64,000 bases of DNA. It comes from Heteronotia binoei. Taxonomy: Eukaryota. Where the stretch lies: contig NC_083237.1 in assembly GCF_032191835.1 (NCBI RefSeq), positions 11,470,001-11,534,000 on the forward strand, written 5' to 3'. This document shows, piece by piece, positions 5,195 through 35,124 of this stretch (positions are counted from its first letter, which is position 1; every line of letters begins with the position of its first letter). The notes under the pieces were generated by a model. The model worked only from the letters and a program-made list of their open reading frames with translations. It searched no databases and was not told the DNA's origin. The position numbers and the translations under genes were made by a program.

Positions 5195-5960
5195 TGAATG
5201 GATAAAAGAAAGCAGGAAAGGATTGTCAGAAGTCTCCATGAAGCTCATCCAGATCTCTCGGTAGTGTAGCTTTTTTCTGGTTTTGTGTCAGGGTTCTATG
5301 TCAAGTATCAAGTCAAAGGCTTTGAAAGGGAATTATTTTTCCAACATTATGAAACAACACTATCCATACTCCCTCTGGGCATATTCAAAGTAGATCTCCT
5401 TTGATGGCCCCTTTATTTATGACCACTGATGCTTCAGGGTCAATTCCAGGTTCCTGGAGGCAGGTGACTGCGATATTTGTTAGAAGAAAAGACTGGTGAT
5501 GTTTTTTGCTCTGTCCTCCAAGACTACAAACACCATAGAGCAAGCTAGATAGCTCCTTCCTGTCTGCCCTGCTTTCACTCACCCTCTCTAATCAATAGAA
5601 TGTAATTTCAGGGAACTTCCTTCCTCTTTGTTCTCTTCCTGTTCCTTTTTCTTCCCTGCATGCATCAGGAGGAACATCATGGTGTCTCTCTGCCTGATCT
5701 GAACTAAGCAGATGGTCTACTATCAATCCAAAGCCATCCATAGCTAGAATAGATAGCCACTCTTTCTCTCTCCGCTACACTTATATGTTATGTTTCTTAA
5801 AATAAATCCACCAGTATTGCTTTCTTAACTTAAAGCAAAGGCTCTCTGTGTGTCGTAACCATTAGACTAGGCCACGTTGTTGTGCTGAAGCTCAGAAAGA
5901 GCACTCTACTAAGTGAAAGTCAGGACGGCTGCCTGACCAGTCCAGCCATCCTATACCTGA

Positions 5961-6096
5961 CGGGGGTGACCAACAGTAGCTCTCCAGATGTTTTTTGCCT
6001 ACAACTCCCATCCGTCTCAGCCATCAGCCATGCTGGCTGGGGCTGATGGGAGTTGTAGGCAAAAAACATCTGGAGAGCTACTGTTGGCCATCCCTG
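5961..6096. mobile_element. Palindromic MITE
   Basis: ccaacagtagctctccagatg...catctggagagctactgttgg inverted arms. Confidence 0.8.
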
Positions 6097-7912
6097 CTAT
6101 ACTAGACCCGAAAGTATTTACAAGAAAAGGGATAGAAGTGGCCCTGTAAACTATTGTCCAATTAGCCTCCTTCCTGTTTAGGGCAAATTATATGCTAACT
6201 ACCTTCTTCTTGGGTTGGGGAGTTAGAGGCCAGGGTCTTCCATGTTGGAGTGTGAACAAACTGGTTATCCAATTGTACCATAAGCTCACCTCATCAGCAA
6301 ATATACATCATAAAAAAGGTGCAAGATTAAATGCTGTTTATTGATCTCTGGGCTAGATTTGACTCAGTATCTTGAGAGTGCTTTGTAACAAGGAGGCACT
6401 GACTACCTTACAGTAGCATCCCTACAGTGGGATCTGCATTTTCCTGACCTGAATTGGAAGCTACTGGTCAGAAACAAGCCAAGTGGAAACACTCTCTGTA
6501 AAAGCCAGAGAACTTCTCTGGGCTTGTCTGTCTGCATAAGGTTACAATATAGGCATCCTCCAGGTAAACTCCTTTCATTCCCCCCCTCCACCCATGATTG
6601 AATGTATAAGAACAATGGGTTTGCAGGTAAAGTATTGCTTATACCTTAATTGCTGGCTAGCAACTAATGGTTAATTTTCTCTTCCTTCCTGCTCCAACTA
6701 GGCATCTTTTTGTCTTACCTCGATGCTAATGCAGGCCACGTTGCACAAATCTTTTGCTTCTCTCCTGACTCCACCTCAGAGTATCGAAAGCAAATTGATA
6801 TCAAACCTTAAGCCCATCGTGGCCCTTTCTGACAACCGTCAAGGTTCATTCACATCTTTTTTCTTGAACTGGGAATCCATTCAGGCTCCCAGGAAGGACC
6901 CATCAAGAGCCACCGCGGCCCCAGAAGGGTCTCCACCCCTCCAAGCACTATATAAACTGAGAGAAAACCCCTCTACAGTGTGCATTCTGTAGGCACCTTG
7001 TACAGTCTGTATCCCTCATTACTCTCTGTAATTGGGTCTGTTGGACATGTCACAATTGTGGTGCATGTCCCATCTCCATTTTCCTCTATATGGACTTCTG
7101 CACATCCAGGACAGGTGAATATTGGCTCTAAAAATCACTATTCCTCGCCACCATCTTCCGAGCCTCTTGATTGTGTGTGTTGTATTACTTGTATGTGTGC
7201 GATTGTATTTTTTACATATTTTTTTCTAAGTAAACATTTTTTAAATATTTTAGATCTGGAGTCCTCCTTCTGATACTGGACATTTGTATTATTGGTGGAA
7301 AGTTACCTGCCACAGGGCTTTCTCTTTTTTTTAAAGCAGGGGTTAGCAGGGGGTGTGGCCTGATATGCAAATGAGTTCCAGCTGGGCTTTTGCTGCAAAG
7401 TGCTGCGTGAAACAATGACGATGTCAGGGGTATGTGGCCTGATATGCAAATGAGTTAATAGGGATGCAATCCCTATTAAACTGCTTATTGAAAAGATTAA
7501 TACTGTATCACCTGACACAAGGACTTAGGCAGAAATCATTCAGAGGATCAATGGCCCTCCATCAGGAACACCTCTGTCCTCATTGCCCTATCACTTAATA
7601 TCCAACTTAAACCTATAAGGTGATTTCCAGATGGTATTTGACCCCTGCTCAACTTTCGCATTCTATTCCTAATATAGTTCCCTTTTGGTGGAAACTCTGT
7701 GGTCTAAGGGCTACCATTTTTCATAAATGGTGGGCTTGCCCCGTGATCACAACTTTTTTGGAAGCAGATCCTTAATGAAATATTTAACATTGATATTGAC
7801 TTCAATAAAAAAAATAATGTTATTTATGAACAGCATGAGTGTCTACAGAATGGTTTCACATGGGTTGGATCCAGATTCATTTCTCCCACCATTGTAAGGT
7901 GGGAGAAAGCAT

Positions 7913-8208
7913 CAGATTTTGCTCTTCCTTCTACTGATGGGAACATACGGTATCTTTTGACTCTCTCCGGGAATGTGGTGATCATTGTGGTCACACTGTC
8001 CGATCACCGTCTCAACACTCCAATGTATTTCTTCCTCCAAAATTTTGCACTATTGGAGATTGGATTCACCGCTTCCATTGTTCCCAAAGCATTATCCAAT
8101 TTGGCCACTGGACAGAAGACTATCTCCATAGCTGGATGTTTCACACAGGGTTTTTCATATTTTTTTCCTGGAGAGCACAGAGTTTTTTCTACTGGCGGTA
8201 ATGTCTTT
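7913..8208 (+). pseudogene. OR pseudogene (psi-OR-B), 5'-deleted, OR-D-like
   Basis: Near-identical to TM1-TM3 of the ORs at 16418/24996 but lacks about the first 20 codons. It has a 5-nt insertion (tac-ggtat-ctt) and a +1 frameshift (ttttttcctggagag versus tttgtcctgggaac), then runs into an N gap. Confidence 0.88.
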
Positions 8209-8379
8209 NNNNNNNNNNNNNNNNNNNNNNNNNNNNNNNNNNNNNNNNNNNNNNNNNNNNNNNNNNNNNNNNNNNNNNNNNNNNNNNNNNNNNNNNNNNN
8301 NNNNNNNNNNNNNNNNNNNNNNNNNNNNNNNNNNNNNNNNNNNNNNNNNNNNNNNNNNNNNNNNNNNNNNNNNNNNNNN
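8209..8379. other. Assembly gap
   Basis: Run of N. Confidence 0.99.
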
Positions 8380-9855
8380 CAGTCTTTATGTATAAAAGGC
8401 AGATCAGTACTTTTATGTCTTCATTACTCTGAATTAATGCCCTAGTACAGTCATTTTAATGTAGTCCTCTGAGGTCAGTGGTCTTAGATTAGATTAACTA
8501 TGGATAGGATTGCATTGTTAGTTTCCTACATTTTTATCTCTCCTTTTGTCTAAGGGGCTCAATACAGTTTACATAGCTCTTTTCTCATTCACCATACTCT
8601 CAGAACCAGCCTGTGTAGTAGAACATTTAGATTTCAGCCAAGAAGAACCTTAGAGACCAAAAACAGTCTCTGTGGGGTTTCTGGACTCCAGGAACTGCAG
8701 AACATGATGGCTACCCACTGAAACCTATGAAGTAGGTTAGGGTGAGAGACAGTGACTTGTCCAAAGTCAACCAAAAAACTTCATGATCCTGTGCAAATTT
8801 GAACCCTGTTCATAACCACCACACCAAGCCAGCTAGAACAGTCAATGTGGCTGAGGGATTAAGACGCCATAATGCTTCCTTTAACCTCTCCCTACGGTTA
8901 CCCTTTTTTTGTGAGTGTGAAATGTGACAGTGCTCTGGAGGTACCATTGGTGGTTGGTTTTAAAACAGAAAAAGGGGAGTGGAGAATAGGGGTGGGATGT
9001 CCCCATAAGTCTGAACTCCAACCCACGGGACTACCACTATCAGAGAATGCAGAAAAAAAGAAGAGGATGATGACAATAAAGTGGAAATGACCCCTCAAGT
9101 TACTTGGTATAGTTTTGCTAGATGAAAAATGGTTCCATGTCCAATTGGTGGCTGTAGAGGCCATAGGTCATCGATGGAGCACTTGCTAGAATGAAGGAAA
9201 TTCCCACCTTCCATCCAAAGTGTCTCAAGTCTCGGACAAACCTATGGATGTGATGGGTTTTTTCCACAGGTACAGTATAGTTGAACGGGACAGGTGGAGT
9301 CATATTCTGACCTAGGTTGTGAATATTGGATGAATATGGGATGAAAGGTTCTGAATATGAGATAAAAGGATGTTTACACATGATAATGCTGACCTCATTC
9401 CTAGACGAGTTACCCAGAATTACTTGGCAGATTTCTAAGACATTCAGATACCTAAGGTAAGGGGAAGGAGGCTAAGTTAAAGATAAAACAATTAATTGTT
9501 AGCAACTATTTTAGACATGGCAAATCCTACAGCCAAAATAAGAGGGAAGTTGGAATTTTGAATGGGAAGTCTTACTGCAAATTAAAGCACTTTACTTTTC
9601 TTCCCATCTCTTTGTTGGAATGTTTTTGAGATGCACTGGCCTCCTTATGGGACCTCCAAATACATCCTGCAGAGCAGGGGTTACTGTTGAGAAAGTCCAT
9701 GTCCTCAATGAGGTTAGACAAACTTCTCATAATGGTTGAATCTCCAACAACTATTGGGAGAGATGGCCCATCAGGCTTGAGGGTCCTAGGCCATGATGTA
9801 TTTATTTCCTTGATCTATGCTCTACCTTTCTCCCTAATGGGGATCCAAGGTAGCT

Positions 9856-10062
9856 TGGAAAGGAAAAAGGAAAGGTCCTCTGTGCAAGCACCAGTTGTTT
9901 CCGACTCTGGGGTGACGTTGCTTTCACAACGTTTTCACAGCAGACTTTTTACAGGGTGGTTTGCCATTGCCTTCCCCAGTCTTTTACACTTTCGCACTTT
10001 CAGGTCGTGAGCAGAGAGTTCAGATCACAGTACTGCTGCTTTACCACTCTGCGCCACAGGGA
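9856..10062 (-). mobile_element. Sauria SINE, internally deleted, inserted in a Squam3/MIR-like SINE (~9790-10180)
   Basis: aaaggtcctctgtgcaagcaccagttgtttccgactctggggtgacg is the reverse complement of the Sauria SINE 3' end. Confidence 0.8.
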
Positions 10063-10678
10063 CGCTCAAGGTGGCTTACAAGGTGGCTTTTTCTCCATTT
10101 TCTCCTCACAGCAACCCTGTGAGATAGGCTAGTCTAAGACCGTGTGACTGGCCTAAGGTCACCCAACAAAACTACCATGGCAAAGAGATGTTCCATGAGG
10201 CATTTGGTTGAGGACAGAGATGGTCCGGCACTCTCATACCCCAACCTCTCCCTTCATTTCTTTGTACCCCTCTACCCAGGGGGCTGGTGGAAACTGGAAT
10301 CTTTCCATCATCTTGGAAATATATCTTGGATATAGTGTTGGAGTTTGTTTGTTTTTGTATGATTGTTTTAAGTATTTTCATGTTATTTTAATCCTATTCT
10401 ATTCTAGTTGCCCTTTGATGTAAACCGCCTTGATCCCTGCTCGCAGTGAAAGGCAGTCTGACAAATCAGATGTAATAAACAAACAAATAAATAAATATTT
10501 ATTCTAGAAAGTACTTCAAGATCTCATTTTGGAAGCCAAGCATAGCCCCAATATTTTGGCTTTTATCTAAGACTACTCTCCACATTTTGCTGTTCATTAT
10601 TAGAAGGAACCTTTTCCTTGATAATTCGGTTATAACCACAAACAAAGAGAATAAAGAGGTTTAAACAAGTACACACAG

Positions 10679-11070
10679 GAATCATAGAATCATAGAGTTG
10701 GAAGGGACCTCCAGGATCATCTAGTCCAACCCCCTGCACAATGCAAGAAATTCACAAACACCTCCCCCTAAATTCACAGGATCTTCATTGCTGTCAGATG
10801 GCCATCTAGCCTCTGTTTATAAACCTCCAAGGAAGGAGAGCCCACCACCTCCCGAGGAAGCCTGTTCCACTGAGGAATCGCTCTAACGGTCAGGAAGTTC
10901 TTCCTAATGTTGAGCCGAAAACTCTTTTGATTTAATTTCAACCCATTGATTCTGGTCCTACCTTCTGGGGCCACAGAAAACAATTCTGCACCCTCCTCTA
11001 GATGACAGCCCTTCAAGTATTTGAAGATGGTGATCATATCACCTCTCAGCTGCCTCCTCTCCAGGCTAAA
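10679..11070 (-). mobile_element. CR1 LINE 3' fragment (ATTCTAT tail)
   Basis: ORF MITIFKYLKG...FLTVRAIPQWNRLP, tail gaatcatagaatcatag. Paralogous copy at 28969-29345. Confidence 0.9.
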
Positions 11071-11582
11071 GCTGCCTTAGACTGAATATCAGATCCTTGG
11101 TCCATCAAAATTAGTCTTATCTACTCAGACTGGCAGTGGATCTCCAGGGTCTCAGGCTGAGGTCTTTCACCTCACTACCTACCAGGGCCTGAGGCTAAGG
11201 TCTCAGGCTGAGGTCTTTTACATCACTACCTACCAGGGTCTAAGGCTAAGGTCTCAGGCTGAGGTCTTTCACATCACTACCTACCAGGGTCTGAGGCTAA
11301 GGTCTCAGGCTGAGGTCTTTCACATCACTACCTACCAGGGTCTGAGGCTAAGGTCTCAGGCTGAGGTCTTTCACATCACTACCTACCAGGGTCTGAGGCT
11401 AAGGTCTCAGGCTGAGGTCTTTCACATCACTACCTACCAGGGTCTGAGGCTAAGGACTCAGGCTGAGGTCTTTCACATCACCACTATCTGCCTGTTCCTT
11501 TTAACTGGAGATGCCAGGGACTGAACCTGGGACCTTCTTGCATGACAGGCAGATGCTCTGCCACTGAGCCACAGTCCCTCCA
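11071..11582 (-). mobile_element. tRNA-headed SINE containing an internal minisatellite
   Basis: Head at ~11510-11580, tail at ~11071. Paralog at 28783-28968. Confidence 0.82.
11148..11481. repeat. 51-bp minisatellite, ~6.5 copies
   Basis: Unit ggtctcaggctgaggtctttcacatcactacctaccagggtctgaggctaa at 11148, 11199, 11250, 11301, 11352, 11403, partial at 11454. Confidence 0.95.
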
Positions 11583-11931
11583 CCAACATTTACAATAAAC
11601 TTTTACAAACTACTGATTTTAATATGTTTCACCGATAGGCACGGTAATCTTTGGTTTCAAGTGGATCATTATGAGAAGCTTGTCTGATCTCATTAAGAAC
11701 ATGGGCTTTCGCAACGGTAATCCCTGCTCTACAGAATGTATTTGGAGATCCCAAATGGAGTCCAGTGGATCTCAAAAACATTCAAACAAGGAGATGGGGG
11801 GGAGGGGAGTAAAATACTTTAATTTGCAGTAAGAGTTCACATTCAAAACTCCAACTTCCCTCTTGACATTTTGGTTATAGGATTTACCATGTCTAAAATA
11901 GTTGCTACCAATTAATTGCTGTTTTCTCATT

Positions 11932-12461
11932 CAGTGCTGGCCGGTGGGTGCATGGCGCCCCAGGCAGACTCCCTGTCCACCGCCCCACCACCACCGTGGC
12001 CGCCCTCCTCCCTGGCCGCACTCCATCACCCACCCAACTCCAGGCTAATCCTTATCCCGCCCGCCACCCCTGCCCTCCTCTCCTTTGCAGCACTGCAAGC
12101 CAGCACCATGCTCCGTCCCGCCCCCCCTGCAGGAGGAGAGTTCGCTCCCTCTCCTTTCTGGAACTGGGGGAACAAAGCCTCCTCTTGTGGGCCTTTCAAA
12201 GGATTAGAAGCCATGCCAGCCACATTGAAGCTGGTAAGGACCAGCCTTGGCTCAGCTGGGGGGGGGGGCGATGGAGCACAGCACTGGCTTGCAGCGCTGC
12301 AAAGGAAGGGAAGGAGGGAGGAAGGCAGCGGTGGGGGAAGAGGGAGGCAGGCAAACTAGGCATTTGCAATGGACACCGTAAGGGGGAGCCCAATTCGGCA
12401 CCCCCCACCTCCCAGTGCCCTAGACAACCACCTAGTTTGCCTATTAGTGGAGCCGGCCCTG
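11932..12461. mobile_element. hAT-type non-autonomous DNA transposon (GC-rich)
   Basis: TIRs cagtgctggc / gccggccctg. 8-bp TSD ttctcatt / ctctcatt. Confidence 0.82.
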
Positions 12462-12651
12462 CTCTCATTAATAGCTTAGCCTCCTTCTCCTCACCCTACA
12501 GAAAGGTAGTAAATCCCAAATGTTCTCTGGCAGAGAGCTCCACCAAACGGGGGCCAGGTATGAGAAGGCATAACCTTTAGGTCCCCAAGTCAGCAAACAG
12601 GAAAACATTTGAAAATTAAAACAGCACTTAAAATATTATCTAAAACCTAAA

Positions 12652-13495
12652 ACCAGGCCCAGATAGCAGCCACTGCCAAGTCCGCATTTTTTCATCTTAG
12701 GCGGGCAAGGCAGTTGGCTCCTTTCCTGGAGGACGGCGACCTGGCAACAGTGATCCATGCAACAGTCACCTCGAGGCTGGACTACTGCAATGCCCTCTAC
12801 ATGGGGCTGCCCCTGTGCCGAACCCGGAAGTTGCAGCTAGTGCAGAATGCCGCTGCCCGGCTGTTGTTAGGGCTCCCTAGACGGGAGCACATTCAGCCGG
12901 GGCTTCGGGGACTGCACTGGCTGCCGATAACATACCGAGTTCAGTACAAGGTGCTGGTTATGACCTTTAAAGCCCTTTATGGCCTGGGACCTGCCTACCT
13001 TAGGGACCGTCTCTCCCCACATGTTCCCCAGAGAGTGCTGAGATAGGGGTCTCAGAACCTTCTTATAATCCCTGGGCCAAAGGAGGCCCATCTGAAAGCA
13101 ACCAGAGACAGGGCCTTTTCGATTGCAGCTCCTTGTTGGTGGAATCAGCTCCCGGAGGAGGTGAGGGCCCTGCGGAACCTTGAACAGTTCCGCAGGGCCT
13201 GCAAAACAGCCCTCTTCCGGTTGGCAAATAATTAATTGTTATCGGAATGCCTGAATATTCAAATCTCGAACAACAGATTATTGAATACTGGAATACTGAA
13301 GAATTGATTTAAGAAAAGGTAGCATAGTACATATTGAAGTGAGTTTTATGTGTTTTTATGTATTTATTGTATAATTATTAATGTATTTTAAACTGACTTT
13401 GTTAGCTTTTTATGTTGTAAGCCGCCCTGAGCCCACCTCGGTGGGGTAGGGCGGGATATAAATCGAATAAATAAATAAATAAATTCAATAAAAAA
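12652..13495 (+). mobile_element. L2-clade LINE, 5'-truncated
   Basis: ATVTSRLDYCNALYMGLP...LQLVQNAAARLL, tail gtaagccgccctgag...(aata)n. Same family as 40561-43700. Confidence 0.88.
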
Positions 13496-13562
13496 CATAT
13501 AAAGACATAAACACATATGAGCATATTTTGAGCCAACTATCAGACACATCCTAAATGTTGCG

Positions 13563-13665
13563 CTCCTTGGGGAAGCACAGCTGAAGTCCCTTGTGTGGCC
13601 TGACAAACAAAGTGCTAAACCAATCTCACATATGCTTTGCAAAGGCCATTAGTTTAGAGGGAGAG
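13563..13665 (+). promoter_or_regulatory. Candidate OR promoter module (upstream of OR-C; E/F type)
   Basis: ctccttggggaagcacagctgaagtcccttgtgtggcctgacaa...gctttgcaaaggccatt. Confidence 0.5.
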
Positions 13666-13942
13666 TTGCGTAGCACACTACCAACAGGAGACTGCTGGCT
13701 CCAATAGATGGGTAGGATAAACGTTCAGTTTGTGAGCTGAGAAAGTCAAGGGCAATGGAAGGCATCAAGAATGTTACAGACTCAGTCTTGTGGAGTGAAG
13801 CTTCTGCATCCATTCATGTAGTGTGGGTAGCTTCATCTCAGTGGCCTCCATCAGGTCCTTTCTTAGCTGCAGGGGCTTCTTTGTTATCTGAAGAAACAAG
13901 AGCAAAGAACAAAACACTGGGAGGTCAAAAAACAAGAAGAAG

Positions 13943-14220
13943 AAGACCGTAGATTTCTCTGAATCTCTCTGATTTCTCTGATTCTCTCTGGATCAGAGTC
14001 TCCGAGCAGCTTACAATCACCTTTATATTCTTTCCCCACAACAGACACCCTGTGAGGTAGGTGAGGCTGAGAGAGCTCTCACAGAACCTGCCCTTTCAAG
14101 GACAGTTCTGCAAGACCTGACCCAAGGCCATTTTGGCAGCTGCAAGTGGAGGAGTGGGGAATCAAACCTGGTTCCCCCAGATAAGAGTCCGCATACTTAA
14201 CCACTACACCAAACTGGCTC
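13943..14220 (-). mobile_element. Squam3-like (MIR-derived) SINE
   Basis: ccactacaccaaactggctc head (reverse complement), acaccctgtgagg core, aagaag tail. Confidence 0.85.
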
Positions 14221-14344
14221 CAAAACAACCCAAAACTAACACACACCCCTAAAAATGCATGTATCCTTTGGTAACTAGGATTGCAAGTGGCAAGTATTTT
14301 GCTGTATGTGTGTGTGTGTGTGTTAAGTACCATCTAATAGCTTC

Positions 14345-14810
14345 TGACCTGGCAACCTTGAATTAATGACCTACAAAAATATCCTATCATGAACAGCCTT
14401 GCTCAGTTCTTGCAAATTTAGGGCTATGGCTTCCTCTGATAGAATTAATCCATCTCAAGTCAAGTCTTCCTCTTTTTTGCTGCCTCTCAATTTTCTCAAC
14501 ATGATTGTCTTTCCCAGTAACTCTCGTTTTCTCATAATGTGGTCAAACTATGATAGCATCAAACTTCTAGGGAGAGTTCAGGCTTGACTTGATCTAGAAT
14601 CCATTTATTTTTTGATCTCCATAGTATCTACAAAACACTCCTCCAACACCATTGCTACTGAATCAGCTTTCTTCCCATCAGGTGTCCTCATTGTCCAATT
14701 TCCAAACTCATACATAGTAATGGGGAATACTATAGCATAAGATATCTTGATCTTAATCACCAGAGATACGTCCTTACAATTATGGATATTTTCTACTCCT
14801 CTGCCCAATT
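14345..14810 (-). mobile_element. Old RTE-clade LINE 3' fragment
   Basis: YAIVFPITMY-like translation. Paralogous copy at ~35625-36090. Confidence 0.7.
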
Positions 14811-15764
14811 TTGCTAGGGAATATGAGGAGTTTATGATGGCATCATAAAAAGAGTTAGTCCTTCTAAGTAACTGAAATTAATGGAAATAGAATGGTGTAA
14901 CTTGGCTCACAATGGTCCTGTTAAGGTGTTACGTTTTGTATTTGTTATCTGGGATACAACTTTGTGGGATTTTATTTTTATCTAGCCACAAGGTAGTAAT
15001 AGTACTCACTTTGGCTCTCACTGGATCTCTATTTACTCTAAATAAAGATCAAGTGAGAGCCAAAGTAAGTAATATTACTATCTAGTGGTTAGATACGAAT
15101 AAAATTTATATAATCTAAATAACATTTATTTAATCTAAATTATTAATCTAAATTAATTTAAATTGTTAAGGGACGGACAGATATCTGACACAGATGATCT
15201 TTCTAGGTAACCTGTCATTTTTGTTTCTTTCTCCAAAAAGGCTTTGACACCACTTGAAATCTTCTGGAAGCTATAATGCTGAGCACCACCTAATCCAATT
15301 AAACCTGCAAAACATTCTGTATTCTACTCTAAACCTGAAGATCACAGTCCTTCCCTCATGGTGTGAAACATGTATTTTTCTTACCCTGCCCACACTTGCT
15401 GTTCAGTGGAGATTTCTCATACTGAATATACAATCTGATTTAAAAAAAAAAAAAAAAAAGTTTTGAAGACCTAATCCAATTAAGTCTGCAAAGTCCAATT
15501 TAGTCTGTATGGACTCACTATGTGTTGTGCACTTTGCATCCCTGTGAGAAAGGCTGACTATAAATAATGGAAATAAAATTAATAAAATAAAAGGGAAGGT
15601 TATGTGCATATGTCTGCTGGACATTAGGCACTTGTCAGGAGCACAAACCTTTTTTTTTTCTCAGCATATAGGATGAGCCTGGTCTAGGAAAGGGGCTCTA
15701 ATTGAGGAACCAGTGTTAAATTATAGAGATTAAGTAATTAAGAGATGGGGATTGTCCATCCCTT

Positions 15765-16262
15765 TGTTAGGAAGGACAAAAGGAAATACTTATACATACT
15801 GGGAGTGATTACAATCTGGAATTCACTACCAGAGATGTAGTGAATGCCACAAGGATAGACAAAGTTAAAAGACGATTAGATAGTTTTGTGAAGGGTTCAT
15901 CTATCAGTGGCAACTAGTTACAGTGACTAAGGAAAGGAAAGGAAAGGCCCCCTTTGCAAGCACCAGTCATTTCTGACTCGGGGGTGAAGTTGCTTTCAGT
16001 GGCTAAAGGGAACCTCTATTTTCTGAGGCAATCAAGCACTGAGTCCCATTGCCAGGAGGCAACTTCAGGGGAAAATCTCAGCCTCTGTAGCCTGTTGTTG
16101 GCCATCCAAGAGGAACTGGTTGGCCACTGTGTGAGATGGGATGCTGCACTAGATAGATCCAGCAGGGCTCTTGTGGCAGAATGTGCTAGGAGGACAGGGC
16201 AAAATAGGGTCTGTAGAACACAGCAATCATGTTTGTCCACACCTCTTCTTATATTCTTATGA
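15765..16262 (+). mobile_element. Old CR1 3' fragment interrupted by a short Sauria SINE 3' end (~15931-16000, minus)
   Basis: tggaattcactacc...tcttcttatattcttatg tail. Paralog at ~24010-24830. Confidence 0.65.
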
Positions 16263-16417
16263 TAATACTTGATTGATATTTGTCTAATACAGCAAGTCAA
16301 TTATTGACTGTAGTAGCTATGGCCATGTTGATTTAAAATCAAAAAGTTGTATTAATTTAATACTATACAACTAACTACCCATTTACCTTCATTTTCTTTT
16401 AGGCAAGTGTCAAAACG

Positions 16418-17356
16418 ATGAACAGCACCATGGTGAGGGAATTCATACTCATGGGCTTTACGAATAATCGTAAGCTTCAGATCTTGCTCTTTCTTCTACT
16501 GATGGGAACATACCTTTTGACTCTCTCCGGGAATGTGGTGATCATTGTGGTCACACTGTCCGATCACCGTCTCAACACTCCAATGTATTTCTTCCTCCGA
16601 AATTTTGCACTACTGGAGATTGGATTCACCACTTCCATAATTCCCAAAGCAATGGTCAATTTGGCCACCGGACAGAGGACTATCTCCATAGCTGGATGTT
16701 TCGCAGAGTTCTTTTTGTATTTTGTCCTGGGGACCACAGAGTTTTTTCTACTGGCAGTAATGTCTTTTGATAGATATGTGGCTATTTGCCACCCTCTTCG
16801 TTACGCCACCATAATGAATAGCACAATATGCTCACTGCTGGTAGGTTTCTCTTGGGCTGGGGGCTTTTTGCTAATTCTGGGTCCAACAATTGCTTTAACT
16901 CAGATGCCATTTTGCGGCCCAAACACTATAAACCATTTTTTCTGTGACAATGGGCCACTGCTCAAACTCGCATGCAGAGACACAAGTTTTCTGGAGCTCA
17001 TGGATTTCTTCATTGCCGTACTCTCTCTTGTTGGGACTTTGATAGTAACTGTTGTCTCCTATGCCAACATTATTTCTAGCATTTTGCACATCCCATCAAC
17101 TCAAGAGAGGCAGAAGGCTTTCTCCACTTGCTCCTCCCATATTATTGTTGTCTCCTTGTTCTATGGTAGCTGTATCTTTATGTATGTTAGGCCTGCCCAA
17201 AGCGTAGGGTTTGATTTCAACAAAGGAGTCTCCATTTTAAACACTGTGGTGACACCTTTGTTGAACCCCTTTATCTACACTCTCAGAAACAAGCAAGTAC
17301 ATGAAGCTCTCAGAGATGCCAAAAGAAAGATTTGTATTAGAAATTGGGGGAGCTGA
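16418..17356 (+). CDS. Olfactory receptor, family-6-like (OR-C), 312 aa, intact, chimeric
   Basis: All OR motifs present. Acceptor ttttag ends at 16402. The 5' part matches OR-D and the 3' part matches OR-A. Confidence 0.96.
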
Positions 17357-17855
17357 TGAATGGATAACAGAAAGCAGGAAAGGATTGTTAGAAGACTCCT
17401 TGAAGCTCCTCCAAATATCTTGGAAGTGTGGCTTTTTCTGGATTTGTGTCAGGGTTCTATGTCAACTATCAAGTCAAAGGCTTTGAAAGGAAATTGTTTT
17501 TCCAACTTTATGAAACAACACTATCCATACTCCCTCTGGGCATATTCAAAGTAGATCCCCTTTGATGGCTCCTTTATTTATGGTCACTGATGCTTCGGGG
17601 TTAATTCCAGGTTCCTGGAGGCAGGTGATTGTGGTATTTGTTAGAAGAACAGACTGTTGTCGTTTCTTCATCAATTCTCCATTACTACAAACATCATAGA
17701 GCAAGCTAGATAGCTAGGACAATATCAATCTCCTTCCTGTCTGCTCAGTATTTACAAAAAAAAAGGAATAGAAGTGGCCCTGTAAACTATTGTCCAATTA
17801 GTTTCCTTCCTGTTTAGGGCAAATTATATGCTGACTACCTTCTGAGTACCTGGAG

Positions 17856-18345
17856 AGCTAGTTTGGTGTAGCTGTTAAGTGTTCAGCCTCTTATCTGGGA
17901 GAATCGGGTTTGGGGAGGGACGGTGGCTCAGTGGTAGAGCATCTGCTTAGGAAGCAGAAGGTCCCAGGTTCAATCCCTGGCATCTCCAATAAGGGTCCAG
18001 GCAAAAAGGTGTGAAAAACCTGAGCTTGAGACCCTGGAGAGCCACTGCCAGTCTGAGAAGACAATACTGACTTTGATGGACCAAAGGTCTGATTCAGTAT
18101 TAGGCAGCTTCATATGTTCATATGATTTCCCACTCCTCCACTTGCACCTGCTGGGATGGCCTTGGGTTAACCATAGCTATCGCAGGAGTTGCCTTGAAAG
18201 GGCAGCTGCTGTGAGAGCCGTCTTAGCCCCACCCACCTCCAGGGTGACTGTTGTGGGGGGAGAAGATATAGGAGATTGTAAGCCGCTCTGAGTCTCTAAT
18301 TCAGAAAGAAGGGCAGGGTATATATCTGCAGTCTTCTTCTTCTTA
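17856..18345 (+). mobile_element. Squam3-like SINE with a nested tRNA-headed SINE (17912-18123)
   Basis: Host head gggtttg|tgatttccc is split by gggagggacggtggctcagtgg...catatgttcata. Confidence 0.85.
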
Positions 18346-18718
18346 GGCTGTAGACTTAGATGCTAGGATCTTCCATGTCAGGGTGTGAAGAAATTGGTTA
18401 TCAATTATATCATATTCACATTGGTTATCGATTATATCATATTCACATCTAAGTTCACCTGGTCAGCAGATATACGTCACAAAAAAGATGCAAGACCACA
18501 TGCTATGTTTATTAATGTGAGATACATTTGACACAGTATCTTGAAAGTACTTTATAAAAGGAGGTACTGCCTACTTTATGTGTGTGTCATTGTATTTTTA
18601 CATATTTTTTGGAGTAAACGTTTTTAAGTATTTTAAATTTGGAGTCTTCCTTCTGACACCTGAACTTTGTATTATTGGTGGAAAGTTCCCTGCTCCAAAA
18701 ATAGCTCTGCCTAAAGTC

Positions 18719-19690
18719 TTTTGTTGTTCAGTTGCACAGTTGAGTCCAACTCTTTGAACCCCATGGACAAAGTCACGCCAGGCCCTCCTGTCTTCCACCA
18801 TCCTCCGAAGTCTGCTCGAATTCGTGTTTGTTACATCAGTAACGCTGTCCAGCCATCTCATCTTTTGCCGTCCCCTTCATCTTTTGCCCTCTATCTTTCT
18901 CAGCATCAGGATGTTCTCCAGTGAGTGCTCTTTTCTCATTTGGTGGCCAAAATATTTGAGCTTCAGCTTCAGCATCTGACCTTCCAGGGAACAGTCAGGG
19001 TTGATTTCCCTTAGGACTGACTGATTTGATCTTCTTGCAGTCCAAGGGACTCTCAAGAATCTTCTCCAGCACCACAGCTCAAAAGCATCTATTCTTCTGT
19101 GCTAGGCCTTCCTTATGGTCCAGCTCTCACAGCCATACATTACTACTGGGAATACCATCGCTTTGACTATATGGACTTTTGTTGGCAGGCTGATGTCTCT
19201 ACTTTTTATTATACTGCCCAGGTTCACCATAGCTGTCCTCCCAAGGAGCAAACGTCTTTTAATTTCATGGCTACAGTCACCATCTGCAGTGATCTTGGAC
19301 CCCAGAAATGTGAAGTCTGTCACTACTTCCATATCTTCTCCTTCTATTTGCCAAGATGTGATGGGGCCGGATGCCATGATCTTAATTTTTTTGAGGTTGA
19401 GCTTCAAGCCTACTTTTGTGCTCTCCTCTTTCACCCTCAACAAGAGGTTCTTTAGGCCATCCTCACTTTCTGCCATTAGAGTGGTGTCATCTGCATATCT
19501 GAGATTGTTGATGTTTTTCCCGGCAATCTTAATTCCAGCTTGTGCTTCGTCCAGGCCAGCATTCCGCATGATGTACTCTGCATATAAATTAAATAAGCAG
19601 GGTGACAATATACAACCTTGTCAAACTCCTTTGCCTGTTCTAAACCAATCAGTTGTTCCATATCCCATTCTGACAGTTATACAGGATCTG
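18719..19690 (-). mobile_element. RTE-BovB LINE, 5'-truncated
   Basis: SPCLFNLYAEYIMRNAGL...NNLRYADDTTLMAESE...GCESWTIRKA, TTDWFRTGKGV, BovB-type 3' end. Absent from the paralogous region near 7.3 kb. Confidence 0.93.
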
Positions 19691-20043
19691 ACCCTTATAC
19701 AGGTTTCTAAAGCATACCACTTGCTAATTCCCTCACAGAAAGACGGGACAGCCAGCATTTCTGGTAACAGTTTATGGAAAAAACTGGCTATAATTTCAAT
19801 CCCACCCAAGGATGCAATCCCTATCAAAGGGCTTGTTAAAAAGATGTATATTATATTGCTTTGCTCAAATTCTAAGTTTTTACATCAATAAGAGACTGCC
19901 TGGAACAAGGATTTAGGCAGAAATCTTTCAGCAGATCAGTGGTCCTCCATCTGGAACACCTTCGTCTATACGGCCCTATCACTCAATATCCAACTTCAAA
20001 CCTATAAGGTGATCTCCAAGTGGTATTTGACCCCTGCTCAATT

Positions 20044-21328
20044 TTGCCTCACTAACCTGTTACATTTCTTTGAGGGGGTGAGCAAACGTGGACAAAGGAG
20101 ACCCGATTAATATTGTTTACCTTGACTTCCAGAAAGCTTTTGATAAAGTTCCTCATCAAAGGCTCTTTAGTAAGCTTGAGAGTCATGGAGTAAAAGTACA
20201 GGTCCTCTTGTGGATCAAAAACTGGCTAATTAATAGGAAGCAGAGAGTGAGTATGAATGGGCAGTCTTTGCAGTGGAGGACATTAAGCAGTGGAGTGCAG
20301 CAGGGCTCAGTACTGGGTCCCATGCTCTTGAACTTGTTCATAAATGATTTGGAGTTGAGAGTAAGCAGTGAAATGTCCAAGTTTGCAGATGACACTAAAT
20401 TGTTCAGGGTGGTGAGAACCAGAGCGGATTGTGAGGCACTCCAAAGGGATCTGTTGAGGCTGGGTGAGTGGGTGTCAACGTGGCAGATGAGGTTCAATGT
20501 GGCCAAGTGCAAAGTAATGCACATTGGGGCCAAGAATCGCAGCTACAAATACAAGTTGATGGGGTGTGAACTGGCAGAGACTGACCAAGAGAGACATCTT
20601 GGGGTCATGGTAGATAACTCACTGAAAATGTCAAGACAGTGTGCGATTGCAATAAAAAAGGCCAACGCCATGCTGGGAATTATCAGGAAGGGAATTGATA
20701 ACAAATCAGCCAGTATCATAATGCCCCTGTATAAATCGATGGTGCGGTCTCATTTGGAATACTGTGTGCAATTCTGGTCACCGCACCTCAAAAAGGATAT
20801 TATAGCATTGGAAAAAGTGCAGAAAAGGACAACTAGAATGATTAAAGGTTTGGAACACTTTCCCTATGAAGAAAGGCTAAAATGCTTGGGGCTCTTTAGC
20901 TTGGAGAAATGTCGACTGCGGGGTAACATGATAGAGGTTTACAAGATTATGCATGGGATGGAGAAGGTAGAGAAAGAAGTACTTTTCTCCCTTTCTCACA
21001 ATCCAAGAACTCATGGGCATTCAATGAAATTGCTGAGCAGTCGGGTTAGAACGGATAAAAGGAGGTACTTCTTCACCCAAAGGGTAATTAACATGTGGAA
21101 TTCACTGCCACAGGAGGTGGTAGCAGCTACAAGCATAGCCAGCTTCAAGAGGGGGTTAGATAAAAATATGGAGCAGAGGTTCATCATTGGCTATTAGCCA
21201 CAGTGTGTATATATGTGTGTGTGTGTGTGTGTGTATATAATTTTTTTGGCCACTGTGTGACACAGAGTGTTGGACTGGATGGGCCATTGGCCTGATCCAA
21301 CATGGCTTCTCTTATGTTCTTATGTTCT
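20044..21328 (+). mobile_element. CR1 LINE, 5'-truncated, open 369-aa RT C-terminal ORF (20088-21197)
   Basis: YLDFQKAFDKVPH, QGSVLGP, FADDTKL, (atgttct)n tail. Absent from the paralogous site at ~7655. Confidence 0.95.
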
Positions 21329-21673
21329 CATTCTATTCCTAATGCATCTCCTTTTGGCTGGAAATTCAGTGGGCTGAGAGCTACCTTCATTCATAATTGA
21401 TGAGCTTGCCGTGCTACCTTTTTGGAAGCAAATCCTTAACAAAATATTTAACATTGCATTGATATTTACTTCAATAAAAATATTTGATTGCAAAACTCTC
21501 TCTCTCACACACACACACACACTGAATTTGTAGAGAATCCAAATTATTTTGGCCCAACTTAATATTTCAGGGATGTACACCCACAGAGCACACACTGATA
21601 AACTTTAGAAAACATAGAGACAGAGTCGATATAGCATAAACAACCTTCATCTAGGGGCACAATAAGTTTTGGC

Positions 21674-21745
21674 CTCTCTAGGGAAGCAGAACTAATCTTG
21701 TGGGTCGTAATGAGGGCAGGACATCTTGGGTACTGCAAAAGTTTT
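21674..21745 (+). promoter_or_regulatory. Candidate OR promoter module (for OR-D), diverged
   Basis: ctctctagggaagcagaactaatcttgtg, then TAATGA, then cttgggtactgcaaaag. The downstream box gagtgaag..tgcatccattc is shared with the 13.8-kb copy. Confidence 0.42.
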
Positions 21746-22269
21746 GTGCTCAGAGTGAAGAATGTTTGCATCCATTCGCATCGGGAAGCAGGAGAGGATC
21801 AGCTTCATCATGGTGGATTGCTAACGTAAGATGGTTGTTCGTCTTCATGGTTCATGACCAAGTCTGGTAAGAGAGGATAACTCTTCCATGCACCAGGCTT
21901 TAGCTCAGTTCTTATGGCCACTATAAAAGTGTTAGTCTTTGAAGATGCCACGGGTATCTTTTTCCTTTCTATTGGCTATGGAATAGAATTTTGAAGAACT
22001 TGCTTTTGTAGGTGCAGAAATCAGAACCAAGAGAAAATGTGGCAGGAGGGCCAAACAACAATGTCCTTTCATCAACGTGGATAGTCCAGGGTGAATATTT
22101 TGTTAAAATTTTGTTTTGGAGTGGGGAACCAAGGGTACTCAATGTGATCCACTATGCAGTACAGATGAGATTGTAGACTACAAGGCAATAGTCAATTTGC
22201 TATTTATGAACAGCATGAAAGTCTGCAGAATGTTTTTATATGGGTTGGATCTTTAGCTTCAAGAAGCAA

Positions 22270-23040
22270 CAATTGAGAGGTGACGTGATAGATGCTTAGA
22301 AAATTATGCCTGGGATAGAGAAGGTAGAGAAAGAAGTACTTTTCTCCCTTTCTCTAAGTACAAGAACTTGTGTGTACTCAATAAAATTAATGAGTAGTAG
22401 GCTTAGGATAGAAAAAAGAAAGTACTTCTTAACTCAAAGTGTAATTAACATGCAACATTCATTGCTGCAGAGTGGTGGCAGGTACAACAAGAAGATAGAA
22501 GATATTGGATTTATATCCTGCCATATACTCTGAATCTTAGAGTCTCAGAGTGGTCACAATCTCCTTTACCTCCTCCCCTCCCCAGAACAGACACCCTGTG
22601 AGGTAGGTGGGGCTAAGAGAGCTGAAACAGCAGCTGCCCTTTCAAGGACTACTGTGAGAGCTATGGCTGACCCAAGACAATTCCAGCAGGTGCTAGTGGA
22701 GGAGTGGGGAATCAAACCTGGTTCTCCTAAATAAGTGTCCAGGTACTTAACCACTACACTAAACCACTAAACCAAGCATAGACAGTTTCAAGAGGGGGTT
22801 GGATAAACTATGGAGCAAAGCTCTGTTCATTGCTATTAGCCACAAAGTATAGATATAACATTATGTGTGGGGCAGTGCTGCTCTGTATTCTTGGTGCTTG
22901 GGGGGGAGGGCAACAGTAGGAGGACTTCTGGAGTTCTGGCCTTGTTGGTGGACCTCTTGATAGCACCTGGTTTTGGATTGCTTTGTGACACAGAGTTTTA
23001 GACTGAATGAGCCATCTGATCTAACATGGCTTCTCTTATA
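22270..23040 (+). mobile_element. Decayed CR1 3' fragment with a nested Squam3-like SINE (~22484-22775, minus)
   Basis: EKVEKEVLFSLS-like translation. 3' UTR resumes after the SINE. Confidence 0.75.
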
Positions 23041-23502
23041 TTGGGTAATTTCCATCAATTTCCTCTCTGTTAGAGATCTCTGATTTGCCTCTCGCATTGT
23101 TCCTGAGGGTCACCTGTCCCCCCAGAAGCAGCATTTTGAGGATATGAATGGACTGTAGCAGAAGGGAGCAGACAGAAAGATTTCAGTTCTTCTGAAAGAA
23201 GTGTGTCATGGGAGTAGACAATTTAGTCCATAGCACACTAGTTTGGCTGCATCATTTAACATGCTTCACATACTTAACTTGGATAAATGCTTAGTGACTA
23301 TATATAGCTTTCTGTAAGTAGGATCCTATTATGTAATTGTTGCACTGATTACTGTATTATGTATCATGCTAATACTTACACTATGTTTTGGTGCCTTTTG
23401 CCTGGATCCAGATGTTACAATCTTAATGCATTGTTTTACTGAATGTCCTATTTTGTTGAACGTATGGACTCACTATGTGTCGTCCACCTTGCATCCCTGC
23501 GA

Positions 23503-23800
23503 GAAAGGAAAGGAAAGGTCCCCTGAGCAAGCACCAATCGTTTCCGACTCTGGGGTGACGTTGCTTTCACAACATTTTCACAGCAGACTTTTTACGAGGT
23601 GGTTTGCCATTGCCTATCCCAGTCTTTTACACTTTCCTCCCAGCAAGCTGGGCACTCATTTTACCGACCTCGGAAGGATGGAAGGCTGAGTCAACCTTGG
23701 GCCGGCTACCTGAACCAGCTTTCACTGGGATAGAACTCAGGTCAGGAGTAGAAAGTTCAGATCACAGCACTGCTGCTTTACCACTCTGCGCCACAGGGCC
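23503..23800 (-). mobile_element. Sauria SINE, near full length
   Basis: (ggaaa)n tail plus gtttccgactctggggtgacg...gatggaaggctgagtcaacc. Approximate TSD gagaa(a)gg. Empty site at 15545. Confidence 0.9.
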
Positions 23801-24342
23801 GCTATGTGAGAAGGACTGACTATAAATAGTGGAAATAAAATGAATAAAATAAAAGGGGAGGATTCTGTGCATATGTCTGCTGTATATTAGGAATTCATCC
23901 GGAGCACAAAACTTTTCTCAACCTATAGGGTTAGACTAGTCTAACTTCTAATGGGGGAACCAGGATTAGGTTATAGAGATTAAGTAACTGAGAGAGGAGG
24001 ATTGTCCATCCCTTTGTCGGGATGGACAAAAGGAAATACTTACTTACACTGAGAGTGATTACAATGTGGAATTCACTAACAGAGGATGTAGTGAATGCCA
24101 CAAGGATAGACAGCTTTAAAAGGGAATTAGATCTTTGGAGGAATGGTCTATCTGTGGAAATTATGGTGACTAAAGAGAACCTCTAATTTCAAAGGCAATC
24201 AAGCACTGAGTCCCAGTGCAAGGAGGCAACTTCAGGGGAAGGTCTCAACCTCTATGGGCTGTTCTTGGCCATCCAGAGGAACTGATTGGCCACTGTGTGA
24301 AATGGAATGCTGGACTAGATGGACCACTGGTCTGAACCAGCA

Positions 24343-24735
24343 GGAGACCCAGTTTGGTGTAGTGGTTCAGTGTGCGGACTCTTATCTGGGAGAACCGGGT
24401 TTGATTCCCCACTCCTCCACTTGCACCTGCTAGCATGGCCTTGGGTCAGCCACAGCCCTGGCAGAGGTTGTCCTTGAAAGGGCAGCTGCTGTGAGAGCCC
24501 TCTCCAGCCCCACCCACCTCACAGGGTGTCTGTTGTGGGGGAGGAAGGTAAAGGAGATTGTGAGCCGCTCTGAGACTCTTCGGAGTGGAGGGCGGGATAT
24601 AAATCCAATATCTTCATCTACCTCACAGGGTGTCTGTTGTGGGGGAGGAAGGGAAAGGAGATTGTGAGCCGCTCTGAGACTCTCCGGAGTGGAGGGCAGG
24701 ATATAAATCCAATATCTTCTTCTTATTCTTCTTAT
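24343..24735 (+). mobile_element. Squam3-like SINE with duplicated 3' module
   Basis: cctcacagggtgtc...ataaatccaatatcttc occurs twice. Confidence 0.88.
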
Positions 24736-24995
24736 CTTGAGGCAGAATGGTGCTAGGAGGGCAGGGCAGAATAGAGCCTGTAGACCACAGCAGGCATGTT
24801 TGTCCACAGCTCTTCTTATGTTCTTATGATAGTACTTGATTGATATTTATGGCCATGCTGATTTGTTGATATAAAGTCAATTATTGACTGTAGTAGTTTT
24901 GGCCATGTTGATTTAAAATCAACAAATTGTATTAATTTAATACTGTACTACTAACTACCCATTTACTTTCATTTCCTTCTTAGGCAAGAGTCAAA

Positions 24996-25913
24996 ATGAT
25001 GAACAGCACCATGGTGAGGGAATTCATACTCATGGGCTTTACAAATAATCGTAAGCTTCAGATTTTGCTCTTTCTCCTACTGACGGGAACATACCTTTTG
25101 ACTCTCTCCGGAAATGTGGTGATCATTGTGGTCACACTGTCCGATCACCGTCTCAACACTCCAATGTATTTCTTTCTCCGAAATTTTGCACTATTGGAGA
25201 TTGGATTCACCACTTCCATCATTCCCAAAGCAATGGCCAATTTGGCCACTGGACAGAGGACTATCTCCACAGCTGGCTGTTTCACACAGTTCTTTTCTTA
25301 TTTTGTCCTGGGAACCACAGAGTTTTTTCTACTGGCAGTAATGTCTTTTGATAGATATGTGGCTATTTGCCACCCTCTTCGTTATGCCACCATAATGAAT
25401 AGCTCAATATGCTCACTGCTGGCAGGTTTCTCTTGGGCTGGAGGCTTTTTGCTAATTCTGGGTCCAACAATTGCTTTAACTCAGATGCCATTTTGTGGCC
25501 CAAACACTATAAACCATTTTTTCTGTGACAACGGGCCACTGCTCAAACTCGCATGCAGAGACACAAGTTTTCTGGAGCTCATGGATTTCTTCATTGCCAT
25601 ACTCTCTCTCGTTGGGACTCTGGCAGTAACAGTTGTCTCCTATGCCAATATTATTTCTAACATCATGCGCATCCAGTCAGCCCAAGAGAGGCAGAAAGCG
25701 TTGTCCACTTGTTCCTCCCATATTATTGTTGTCTCCCTTTTTTATGGTAGCTGCATCTTTGTGTATTTGCGGCCTTCTCAAAGTGAAGGGGTTGATTTCA
25801 ACAAAGGAGTCTCTATAATAGCCACCGTGGTTACCCCATTGTTGAACCCCTTCATCTACACTCTCAGAAATAAGCAAGTTCACCAAGTGTTCAGAGAGAT
25901 CCAAAAGAAGGTA
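24996..25913 (+). CDS. Olfactory receptor, family-6-like (OR-D), open up to the assembly gap
   Basis: Uninterrupted from ATG (24996 or 24999) through [15 protein letters not shown]...KKV. The stop codon is hidden in N gap 25914-26122. Confidence 0.92.
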
Positions 25914-26122
25914 NNNNNNNNNNNNNNNNNNNNNNNNNNNNNNNNNNNNNNNNNNNNNNNNNNNNNNNNNNNNNNNNNNNNNNNNNNNNNNNNNNNNNNN
26001 NNNNNNNNNNNNNNNNNNNNNNNNNNNNNNNNNNNNNNNNNNNNNNNNNNNNNNNNNNNNNNNNNNNNNNNNNNNNNNNNNNNNNNNNNNNNNNNNNNNN
26101 NNNNNNNNNNNNNNNNNNNNNN
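25914..26122. other. Assembly gap at the OR-D 3' end
   Basis: Run of N. Confidence 0.99.
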
Positions 26123-26198: not shown

Positions 26199-26407
26199 GA
26201 CAGATGGACAGATAGGTAGATGTTAAGAGAAATTATGCATGTATTATTACACAAATCTGTATAGCTTTTTCCAGATATATAAATATGATACAGCAGTCTT
26301 TTCCTATAAAAGGCAAATCAGTATTTTTGTGTCTTGGTCAAGCTGAATTAGTACCTAGTACAACCATTATGGTGCAGTTCTCTGAGGTCAATGGTCTTAG
26401 ACTAGAT

Positions 26408-26700
26408 CAGGGGTGGCCAGACTTGCTTAATGTAAGAGCCACATAGAATAAATGTCAGATGTTAGAGAGTCACAAGACAGGAAGGAAGGGTGGCAAGAAA
26501 GGTGAAAAGAAAACAAATAGATGGAGAGGGAGAAAGGTAGAAAGAAAGCAACAAACTATAAATGCATTCTCCAAGCCACCAGATGGCTTGGCTTGGAGAA
26601 GCAATTTAGAGGCAAATGCCTTCTCCAAGCCAGCTAGAGGGGTGATGGAGACTTTGAGAGCATAATGTATGTGAAAGAGCCACACGTGGCTCCCAAGAGG
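26408..26700. mobile_element. hAT-like DNA transposon remnant
   Basis: caggggtggcc end, aagagcc(ac) motifs. Absent from the paralog near 8.5 kb. Confidence 0.5.
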
Positions 26701-27820
26701 ATGTCTAATTGGTGGTTGTAGAGGCCGTAGGTCCTTGATGGAGCATTTGCTAGAATGCAAGAAATTCCCACCTTCCATCTTATGTGTCTCAGATCTTGGA
26801 CAAACCAATGGATCTGATGGGTTTTTCACAGGTATAGTTCGATGGGACATATTCTGACCTAGGTTGTGAATATGGGATGAAGGGTTGTGAATATGAGATA
26901 AAAGGATGTCTACACATGATAATGCTGACCTCATGCCTAGACGAGTTAACAAGAATAACTTGGCAGATTTCTAAGACATTCAGATACCAAAGGTGAGGAG
27001 AAGAAGGCTAAGCTATTAATGAGCAAACAATTAATTGTCAGCAATTATTTTAGACACGGTAAATTCTACAGCCAAAATATCAAGAGTGAAGTTGGAAATG
27101 TGAATGTGAACTCTTACTGCAAATTAAAGCACTTTACATTTTCCCCCATCTCTTTGTTGGAATGTTTTTGAGATGCTCTGGCCTCCATTCAGGATCTCCA
27201 AATGCATTCAGTAGAGCAGGGGTTACTGTTGAGAAAGCCTGTGTTCTCAGTGAAGTCAAACTAACTTCTCATAATGGTTGAATCTCCAACAACTATTGGG
27301 AGAGATGGCCCTTCAAGCACGAGTGTCCTAGGCCATTATATATTTATTTCCTTGATTTATGCTCTAACTTTCTACATATGTGATGGACCCAAGGTGGCTT
27401 AAACGAGGCATGTTGTAAAATTTTGATTTTACAACAGCATGGTTTCGTCAGCTCACAATTTGTTTCTGGGTTAGGTTCAATAGTTCATCAGAGATCCAAT
27501 GTGGTTAGAGTGTTGGATTAGGGTCTGGGAGAACCAGGTTCAAATCCCCACTTTCCAAGGTAGTTTTGCTGGGCCAGTCACACACTCTCAGACTAGCCTA
27601 TCTCACAGGGTTGCTGAGAGGAGAAAATGGAGAAAAAGCCACCTTTCTCATCAATCTGACAGAAAACATGGGTAGCAATCATTGTTCCCTCTAACTGAGT
27701 TAGTGTGAACTAGCTCACCGTTTTTAGCCTCCAACTCACACAGTTTTGTCTTAACGCAGGAAAAATGGCCCCAGAGCAAACAAATTTACACAGTGGCTCA
27801 CAACCTGAATGCCAGTAGCC

Positions 27821-35093: not shown

Positions 35094-35124
35094 TACATCT
35101 TGAGCTGGCTTCATCAGATGCATG

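Follow-up and report, generated by a model that had tools for sequence, protein, structure and literature searches.

The window analysed here, that is, the whole stretch of DNA under study, comprises 64,000 nucleotides of the Heteronotia binoei genome (assembly GCA_032191835.1, chromosome record CM063339.1). Its olfactory receptor (OR) genes, OR-A to OR-H, form an array on one strand and lie as follows.

4256-5194, plus strand: OR-A, intact, the upstream parent type; orthologous to Gekko P0009 and Paroedura P0005
7907-8208 (within 7880-8208), plus strand: OR-B, a D-type pseudogene fragment, followed by an N stretch at 8209-8379
16418-17356, plus strand: OR-C, an intact hybrid OR gene with an open reading frame of 312 codons and a stop
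24999-25913, plus strand: OR-D, the downstream parent type, open over 305 codons and followed by an N stretch at 25914-26122; orthologous to Gekko P0003 and Paroedura P0008
37781-38722, plus strand: OR-E, intact
48045-48986, plus strand: OR-F, intact
about 53514, plus strand: OR-G
60460, plus strand: OR-H

The intactness of OR-D is a statement about codons 1-305 alone, its final codons and stop lying within the N stretch and outside all of the analyses. OR-E and OR-F form a young intact pair, with a DNA path length of ~0.09 in the left part of the gene and ~0.04 in the right part. Their upstream regions are merely 65-78% identical, and the coding regions of this pair may be another instance of homogenisation.

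The coding region of OR-C is a single uninterrupted exon of 312 codons in which the OR signature motifs are complete: an N-terminal NxS/T (residues 2-4), PMYFFL (55-60), a MAYDRY-like motif (115-120), KAFSTCxSH (233-241) and NPxIY in the form NPFIY (283-287). The protein matches Pfam 7tm_4 over residues 31-298 (1.5e-51; 176.3 bits against a cut-off of 27) and consOR6 (PDB 9ldv) over its full length (residues 2-305; 2.8e-119). Its closest named relatives are gecko proteins annotated as "olfactory receptor 6E1-like / 49-like". OR-C resembles consOR6 and the family-6 class II ORs over the full length and in every OR motif, and it differs from them in nothing that affects its membership. Judged from its sequence, OR-C is unambiguously a class II, family-6-like vertebrate olfactory receptor, and it is a mosaic of two orthogroups within family 6.

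The mosaic was delimited by comparison of OR-A, OR-C and OR-D, which align without indels. Sites were taken as informative where OR-C shares its base with just one of the two other genes, and this three-way pattern yielded 170 of them. Up to CDS position 639, OR-C is D-like at 103 sites and A-like at 14, and from position 651 it is D-like at 8 and A-like at 45 (Fisher p = 1.4e-20). The maximum chi-square of the switch is 85.6 and was reached in none of 10,000 permutations, the largest permuted value being 24.9; the corresponding breakpoint interval is 17056-17068 of the window. Positions at which three gecko species show fixed differences between the A-type and the D-type orthogroup (CDS positions 637/639 and 651) bound the switch to TCCTATGCCAA. 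OR-C consists of two parts with different closest relatives, joined at one sharp switch:

16418-17056, plus strand: D-type part of OR-C, codons 1-213 (N-terminus and TM1 to TM5), 96% identical to OR-D and 82% to OR-A
17057-17067, plus strand: crossover interval J2, TCCTATGCCAA, codons 214-217 (S-Y-A-N), at the cytoplasmic end of TM5
17068-17356, plus strand: A-type part of OR-C (ICL3, TM6, TM7 and C-terminal tail), 91-95% identical to OR-A and 78-87% to OR-D

At the protein level, OR-C differs from OR-D by 21 residues in the back part and from OR-A by 45 residues in the front part. J2 lies directly past the conserved SY at the inner end of TM5, 16 codons ahead of KAFSTCSSH at the start of TM6. 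Its 11 nucleotides are identical between the A and D types, in surroundings that are ~82% identical.

The first-pass annotation of this DNA had described OR-C as an open and intact chimera, with TM1-5 of the D type and TM6-7 and the C-terminus of the A type. The reading frame, the site counts and the half-gene trees presented below all bear out this description, and the crossover, which had been placed within the same 11 nucleotides, is bounded exactly there by the orthogroup-diagnostic sites. The shared strings that it quoted are exact and have no other occurrence: a 48-mer is found at 16970 (OR-C) and 25551 (OR-D) only, and a 60-mer at 5069 (OR-A) and 17231 (OR-C) only. The C-terminal tails likewise read as stated, OR-A and OR-C encoding a common 14-residue string and OR-D encoding QVFREIQKK. 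Sliding-window identity and separate trees for the two parts of the gene had been suggested as checks. The former gives the same D-to-A switch in OR-C; in the latter the topologies conflict when orthologues are added, and the approximately unbiased (AU) test rejects the alternatives.

Since three sequences alone cannot name the recombinant among them, orthologues, synteny and distances were used. The A-D distance is nearly equal in the two halves (0.24 and 0.27). The C-D distance rises from 0.048 on the left to 0.25 on the right, and the C-A distance falls from 0.24 to 0.077. Synonymous distances behave in the same manner, C-D going from 0.12 to 0.67 and C-A from 0.59 to 0.19, a threefold drop; because synonymous sites repeat the mosaic pattern, constraint at the protein level is not its cause. 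Gekko japonicus and Paroedura picta each possess one A-type and one D-type gene, and in both species the N-terminus and the tail of each gene are of matching type throughout. The A-type tails in these geckos end in a 13-residue string or in ALREAKRKICTRS, and the D-type tails contain EVFR.

In the left-half tree with orthologues, OR-C is sister to Heteronotia OR-D (100/99) and lies within the D clade (99/96). In the right-half tree, the D clade (98/96) leaves OR-C out, and OR-C pairs with Heteronotia OR-A (75/89). In AU tests, a sister pair of OR-C and OR-D is rejected for the right half (p = 1e-4) and a grouping of OR-C with the A types for the left half (p = 2e-6), and the protein half trees agree with the DNA half trees. 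The looser constraint that OR-C lies inside or beside the D-type clade on the right is rejected with protein (p = 0.0175) but not with DNA (p = 0.2).

Gene order is in line with the trees. The Gekko A-type and D-type genes are immediate neighbours on one strand, separated by 6.7 kb that contains no hybrid; in Paroedura, the order is A-type gene, unrelated minus-strand OR, D-type gene. The A-type and D-type orthologues are thus separate in both geckos and a hybrid is lacking in Gekko, which identifies OR-C as the recombinant. On this comparative evidence, the A and D orthogroups are old and pure, and OR-C was born in the Heteronotia lineage. The extra OR of Paroedura picta (L002 13954-14913, minus strand) belongs to a different subtype. 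Its absence from the A-D interval of both Gekko and Heteronotia suggests independent remodelling of this interval in several geckos.

The change of parent extends into the DNA on both sides of the gene, which is organized as follows.

8380-15471, plus strand: copy of the sequence that separates OR-D from OR-E, with transposons, lying between OR-B and OR-C
15471-15510, plus strand: J1, a non-homologous junction between the copy of the region preceding OR-E (pre-E copy) and the D-type upstream region
15506-16417, plus strand: D-type upstream region of OR-C, with an intron end and its acceptor ttttcttttag at 16391-16401
17357-21480, plus strand: A-type 3' flank of OR-C, into which SINE, LINE and CR1 elements have inserted in a copy-specific manner
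21511-24978, plus strand: remainder of the C-D interval, orthologous to the remaining A-D intergenic sequence of Gekko; 21511-24323 is matched in order by Gekko L001 14539-17450

The upstream region of OR-C is homologous to 23805-24978 upstream of OR-D (78-92%) and to the sequence preceding the D-type gene of Gekko (L001 16593-17450). The region upstream of OR-A is unalignable with those of OR-C and OR-D past about 100 nucleotides before the ATG. The 3' flank of OR-C is colinear with 5194-7811, 3' of OR-A, in six blocks of 78-93% identity, and also with the 3' flank of the Gekko A-type gene. Indeed, the entire C-to-D interval is colinear with the whole A-D intergenic region of Gekko. The first-pass annotation had claimed homology of the upstream introns of OR-C and OR-D, and this homology reaches back to about 15506 at 82-92% identity. 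It had also claimed several kilobases of homologous 3' flank between OR-C and OR-A. This holds for colinear patches, which extend to 21480 and 7811, respectively, but contiguous homology covers just 360 nucleotides (about 91%) and is interrupted by transposons beyond.

On the 5' side of OR-C, D-type homology spans 0.9 kb only. Past J1 come the pre-E copy, a D-type 3' flank and OR-B, and not a plain A-D intergenic region. Positions 8380-9856 match 26294-27400 (the D-type 3' flank) and 12494-15471 match 34587-36730 (pre-E), in order. Homology to 36395-36730 stops at 15471, and that to the OR-D upstream region begins at about 15506. Homology between the proximal upstream region of OR-E and the upstream regions of OR-D and OR-C, sought as a basis for homologous recombination at J1, was not detected. 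The pre-E copy corresponds to sequence located 1-3 kb before OR-E and terminates with an A-run (15441-15458) ahead of J1. If the OR-D promoter lies more than 1.2 kb upstream of the ATG, OR-C may depend on copied pre-E sequence.

The locus can be laid out as a first copy (A-right, intergenic region, OR-B, D-flank and pre-E copy), a 1.55-kb D-type insert in the middle (upstream region plus codons 1-213) and a second copy (A-type codons ~217-312, intergenic region, OR-D, D-flank and pre-E, then OR-E). OR-B is homologous from codon ~19, and its frame is shifted by a 5-nucleotide insertion (GGTAT) and a 1-nucleotide insertion. It directly abuts A-type intergenic sequence, so that it lacks its own upstream region together with about 0.7 kb of the intergenic region. 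OR-B differs from OR-C and from OR-D at 25 of 293 positions each and from OR-A at 64 of 293, and OR-C and OR-D differ at 16. If OR-B evolves neutrally, OR-B, the left part of OR-C and OR-D would form a near star.

A block of ~300 nucleotides shared by 23503-23803 and 9858-10066 was dropped as evidence of colinearity, being absent in Gekko and having a third partial copy at 15932-15998; this repeat, found near OR-B, OR-C and OR-D, looks like a young mobile element that is not part of the duplication. A SINE-like repeat of ~220 nucleotides occurs across the cluster in at least 12 copies, on both strands and with 72-89% identity (among them 17908-18345, 13982-14221, 22489-22764 and 24346-24619), and several of the copies differ between the duplicated blocks. 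Two 3' portions of CR1-type LINEs, at 20041-21325 and 32605-33963, are 93% identical to each other and carry long open reverse-transcriptase frames (ORFs 20088-21197 and 32774-33763), which points to fairly recent CR1 activity. The element at 20041-21325 is absent from the OR-A flank, and thus it was inserted into the 3' flank of OR-C after the duplication.

The two halves of OR-C have the same age relative to the split between Heteronotia and Gekko. In the left half, dS between OR-C and OR-D is 0.12 and that between the Heteronotia and Gekko D-type genes is 0.25 (ratio 0.49). In the right half, dS between OR-C and OR-A is 0.19 and that between the A-type genes is 0.34 (ratio 0.55), a small count of 10 synonymous differences. 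The flank identities of 78-93% are compatible with these ages. When polarised by orthologues, the 19 changes on the OR-C branch divide into 12 synonymous and 7 non-synonymous ones, whereas neutrality would give a ratio of about 1 to 3.3 (from some 215 synonymous and 700 non-synonymous sites; binomial p = 2.6e-4). Taken with the intact frame and motifs, this excess argues that OR-C has been kept as a coding gene since its formation and indicates purifying selection.

OR-C is very probably a functional-looking D/A hybrid that arose by recombination in the Heteronotia lineage as an anti-Lepore product and has since been under purifying selection. The ancestral order was A then D, as kept in Gekko. 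The D-type gene would have donated the 5' portion (upstream region and codons 1-213) and the A-type gene the 3' portion (codons ~217-312 and all that lies downstream), the switch taking place inside the 11-nucleotide stretch common to both types at the cytoplasmic end of TM5. Unequal crossing-over or a homology-guided template switch between misaligned tandem paralogues would be expected to give such an anti-Lepore duplication product. The order observed is A (4256), C (16418) and D (24999), all on the plus strand, OR-C being composed of the 5' part of the downstream parent and the 3' part of the upstream parent. The duplicated unit is a two-gene block, from A-right through D to pre-E, the first copy of which holds a decayed D-type gene, OR-B; OR-C lies where the two tandem copies meet.

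Unequal crossing-over or long conversion had been offered as the origin of OR-C in the first-pass annotation. Of the two, crossing-over or a template switch fits better and conversion less well, and we prefer the former because of the far-reaching parental flanks, the duplication polarity and the equal-aged halves. A single simple D x A crossover is nevertheless insufficient as a complete account. It predicts the order A, intergenic region, hybrid, intergenic region, D, and the A-C interval is not a plain copy of the C-D interval. The presence of OR-B, the D-type 3' flank, the pre-E copy and J1 in the A-C interval means that at least two events (two or three in series) or one complex event took place. 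Tentatively, and with some doubt, OR-B and OR-C might have been born together in one replication-based rearrangement with two template switches, of the FoSTeS/MMBIR type, which occurred in the germline and was fixed. Replication would have run through D to pre-E and made a non-homologous jump back to the D upstream region (J1); D codons 1-213 would then have been recopied, and a switch on the 11 nucleotides into A codon ~217 (J2) would have led onward. If this is true, a single complex event yields both the near star of OR-B, C-left and OR-D and a uniform age of all of the duplicated blocks, and an event of the FoSTeS/MMBIR type created an intact, selectively maintained receptor.

Long gene conversion between paralogues is improbable in our view. 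It would require that an A-D unit was duplicated to A, B, A2 and D and that the 5' two-thirds of A2, with about 0.9 kb upstream, were overwritten by D-type sequence. The locus does resemble the duplication of a two-gene unit (copy 1, A...B...pre-E copy; copy 2, C-right...D...pre-E), the second A-type gene of such a unit would occupy the place of OR-C, and conversion can yield anti-Lepore-like chimeras at constant copy number (PMC4041002). However, the D-type tract would measure at least 1.55 kb (15506-17056), and its 5' end coincides with the non-homologous J1. An A-type upstream remnant is lacking, and the A and D upstream regions are unalignable, so that the tract would have had no homology to resolve in. 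A later conversion also predicts a younger left half, whereas the relative dS values are 0.49 and 0.55, and the near star of OR-B, C-left and OR-D speaks against it as well.

An assembly artefact, in which two paralogues were falsely joined, is highly improbable, even though paralogues stand in tandem at this locus, N stretches lie close by (8209-8379 and 25914-26122) and a search for the OR-C protein in an independent assembly found it in one assembly only, GCA_032191835.1. OR-C diverges by 4% from OR-D on the left and by 5-7% from OR-A on the right, with 19 private changes spread over both parts. Divergence of 4-7% from each parent excludes a computational joining of OR-A and OR-D reads. Moreover, 11 identical bases in about 82% identity at the switch offer an assembler no overlap for a mis-join, the flanks contain copy-specific transposon insertions, and the open frame bears a signature of purifying selection. 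It is barely credible that OR-C is not recombinant at all, the genes being ordinary duplicates in which the 3' part of OR-D, together with the 5' part of OR-A, diverged fast or was replaced by unsampled donors. The window-only trees leave some room for this account: their left half is decisive, but on the right the branch joining OR-A and OR-C is short (48/27) and the AU test does not reject OR-C with OR-D (p = 0.32), because the D branch is long (0.22). Against it, the 3' part of OR-D groups with its D-type orthologues (98/96) and the 5' part of OR-A with its A-type orthologues (100/99), so that the parents are pure throughout; from one side of the breakpoint to the other, the C-A distance at synonymous sites falls threefold, and the flanks change parent too.

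Among ORs in general, TM3, TM5 and TM6 line the odorant pocket. The putative pocket of OR-C would be built from two parents, and expression of the gene, an odorant response and any new specificity are likewise putative. For expression in olfactory neurons and a response to odorants, the purifying selection on the OR-C branch is no more than indirect support. OR-A, OR-D and the hybrid OR-C coexist in one genome and form a clean natural domain swap, and this trio could separate the odorant tuning carried by TM1-5 from that carried by TM6-7.

Hybrids of tandem paralogues are known from several systems. The red and green cone opsins are GPCRs in tandem arrays, in which hybrids arise by unequal crossing-over, transmembrane segments are swapped and ligand or spectral tuning is shifted. 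Among the opsins, recombination joins parents of about 98% identity and falls mainly in introns; the parents of OR-C are far more divergent, and its coding sequence lies in a single exon. The closest parallels in the receptor family itself are human OR8U1, in which OR8U8 and OR8U9 are fused, and the OR51A2/OR51A4 fusion, both formed by NAHR (Hasin et al. 2008, PMC2570968). Like OR-C, they are intact chimeric ORs produced by coding-region recombination of tandem same-strand paralogues, and new odorant-binding properties have been proposed for them (PMC2570968). However, the human fusions are Lepore-type deletion alleles, and a haplotype that carries one has lost the parents, whereas OR-C is of the duplication type and both parents are kept. 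The human breakpoint lies in a 119-bp identity block and that of OR-C in 11 nucleotides between parents about 82% identical; the OR-C event is also old (dS ~0.12-0.19), and its locus has a second junction. OR-C provides a non-mammalian case in which intragenic recombination gives an instantly divergent OR kept by selection, as Hasin et al. proposed for human ORs.

The architecture of OR-C is that of the anti-Lepore HBB/HBD fusion genes of the beta-globin cluster, in which a hybrid lies between its parents and is retained as functional (Gaudry et al. 2014, PMC4041002). In both systems, the 5' end of the downstream gene is joined to the 3' end of the upstream gene between the parents, and the ambiguity between crossing-over and conversion is common to globins and OR-C. 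The globins are another gene family, and their parent genes are usually inactivated later, whereas OR-A and OR-D are open (OR-D as far as it is readable). As the human OR8U1, the globins and the opsins illustrate, the mechanism is well known, and it is well supported that OR-C is an ordinary example of it that calls for no new mechanism. OR-C supplies the duplication-type counterpart from a squamate; both of its parents survive, and there is evidence of selection.
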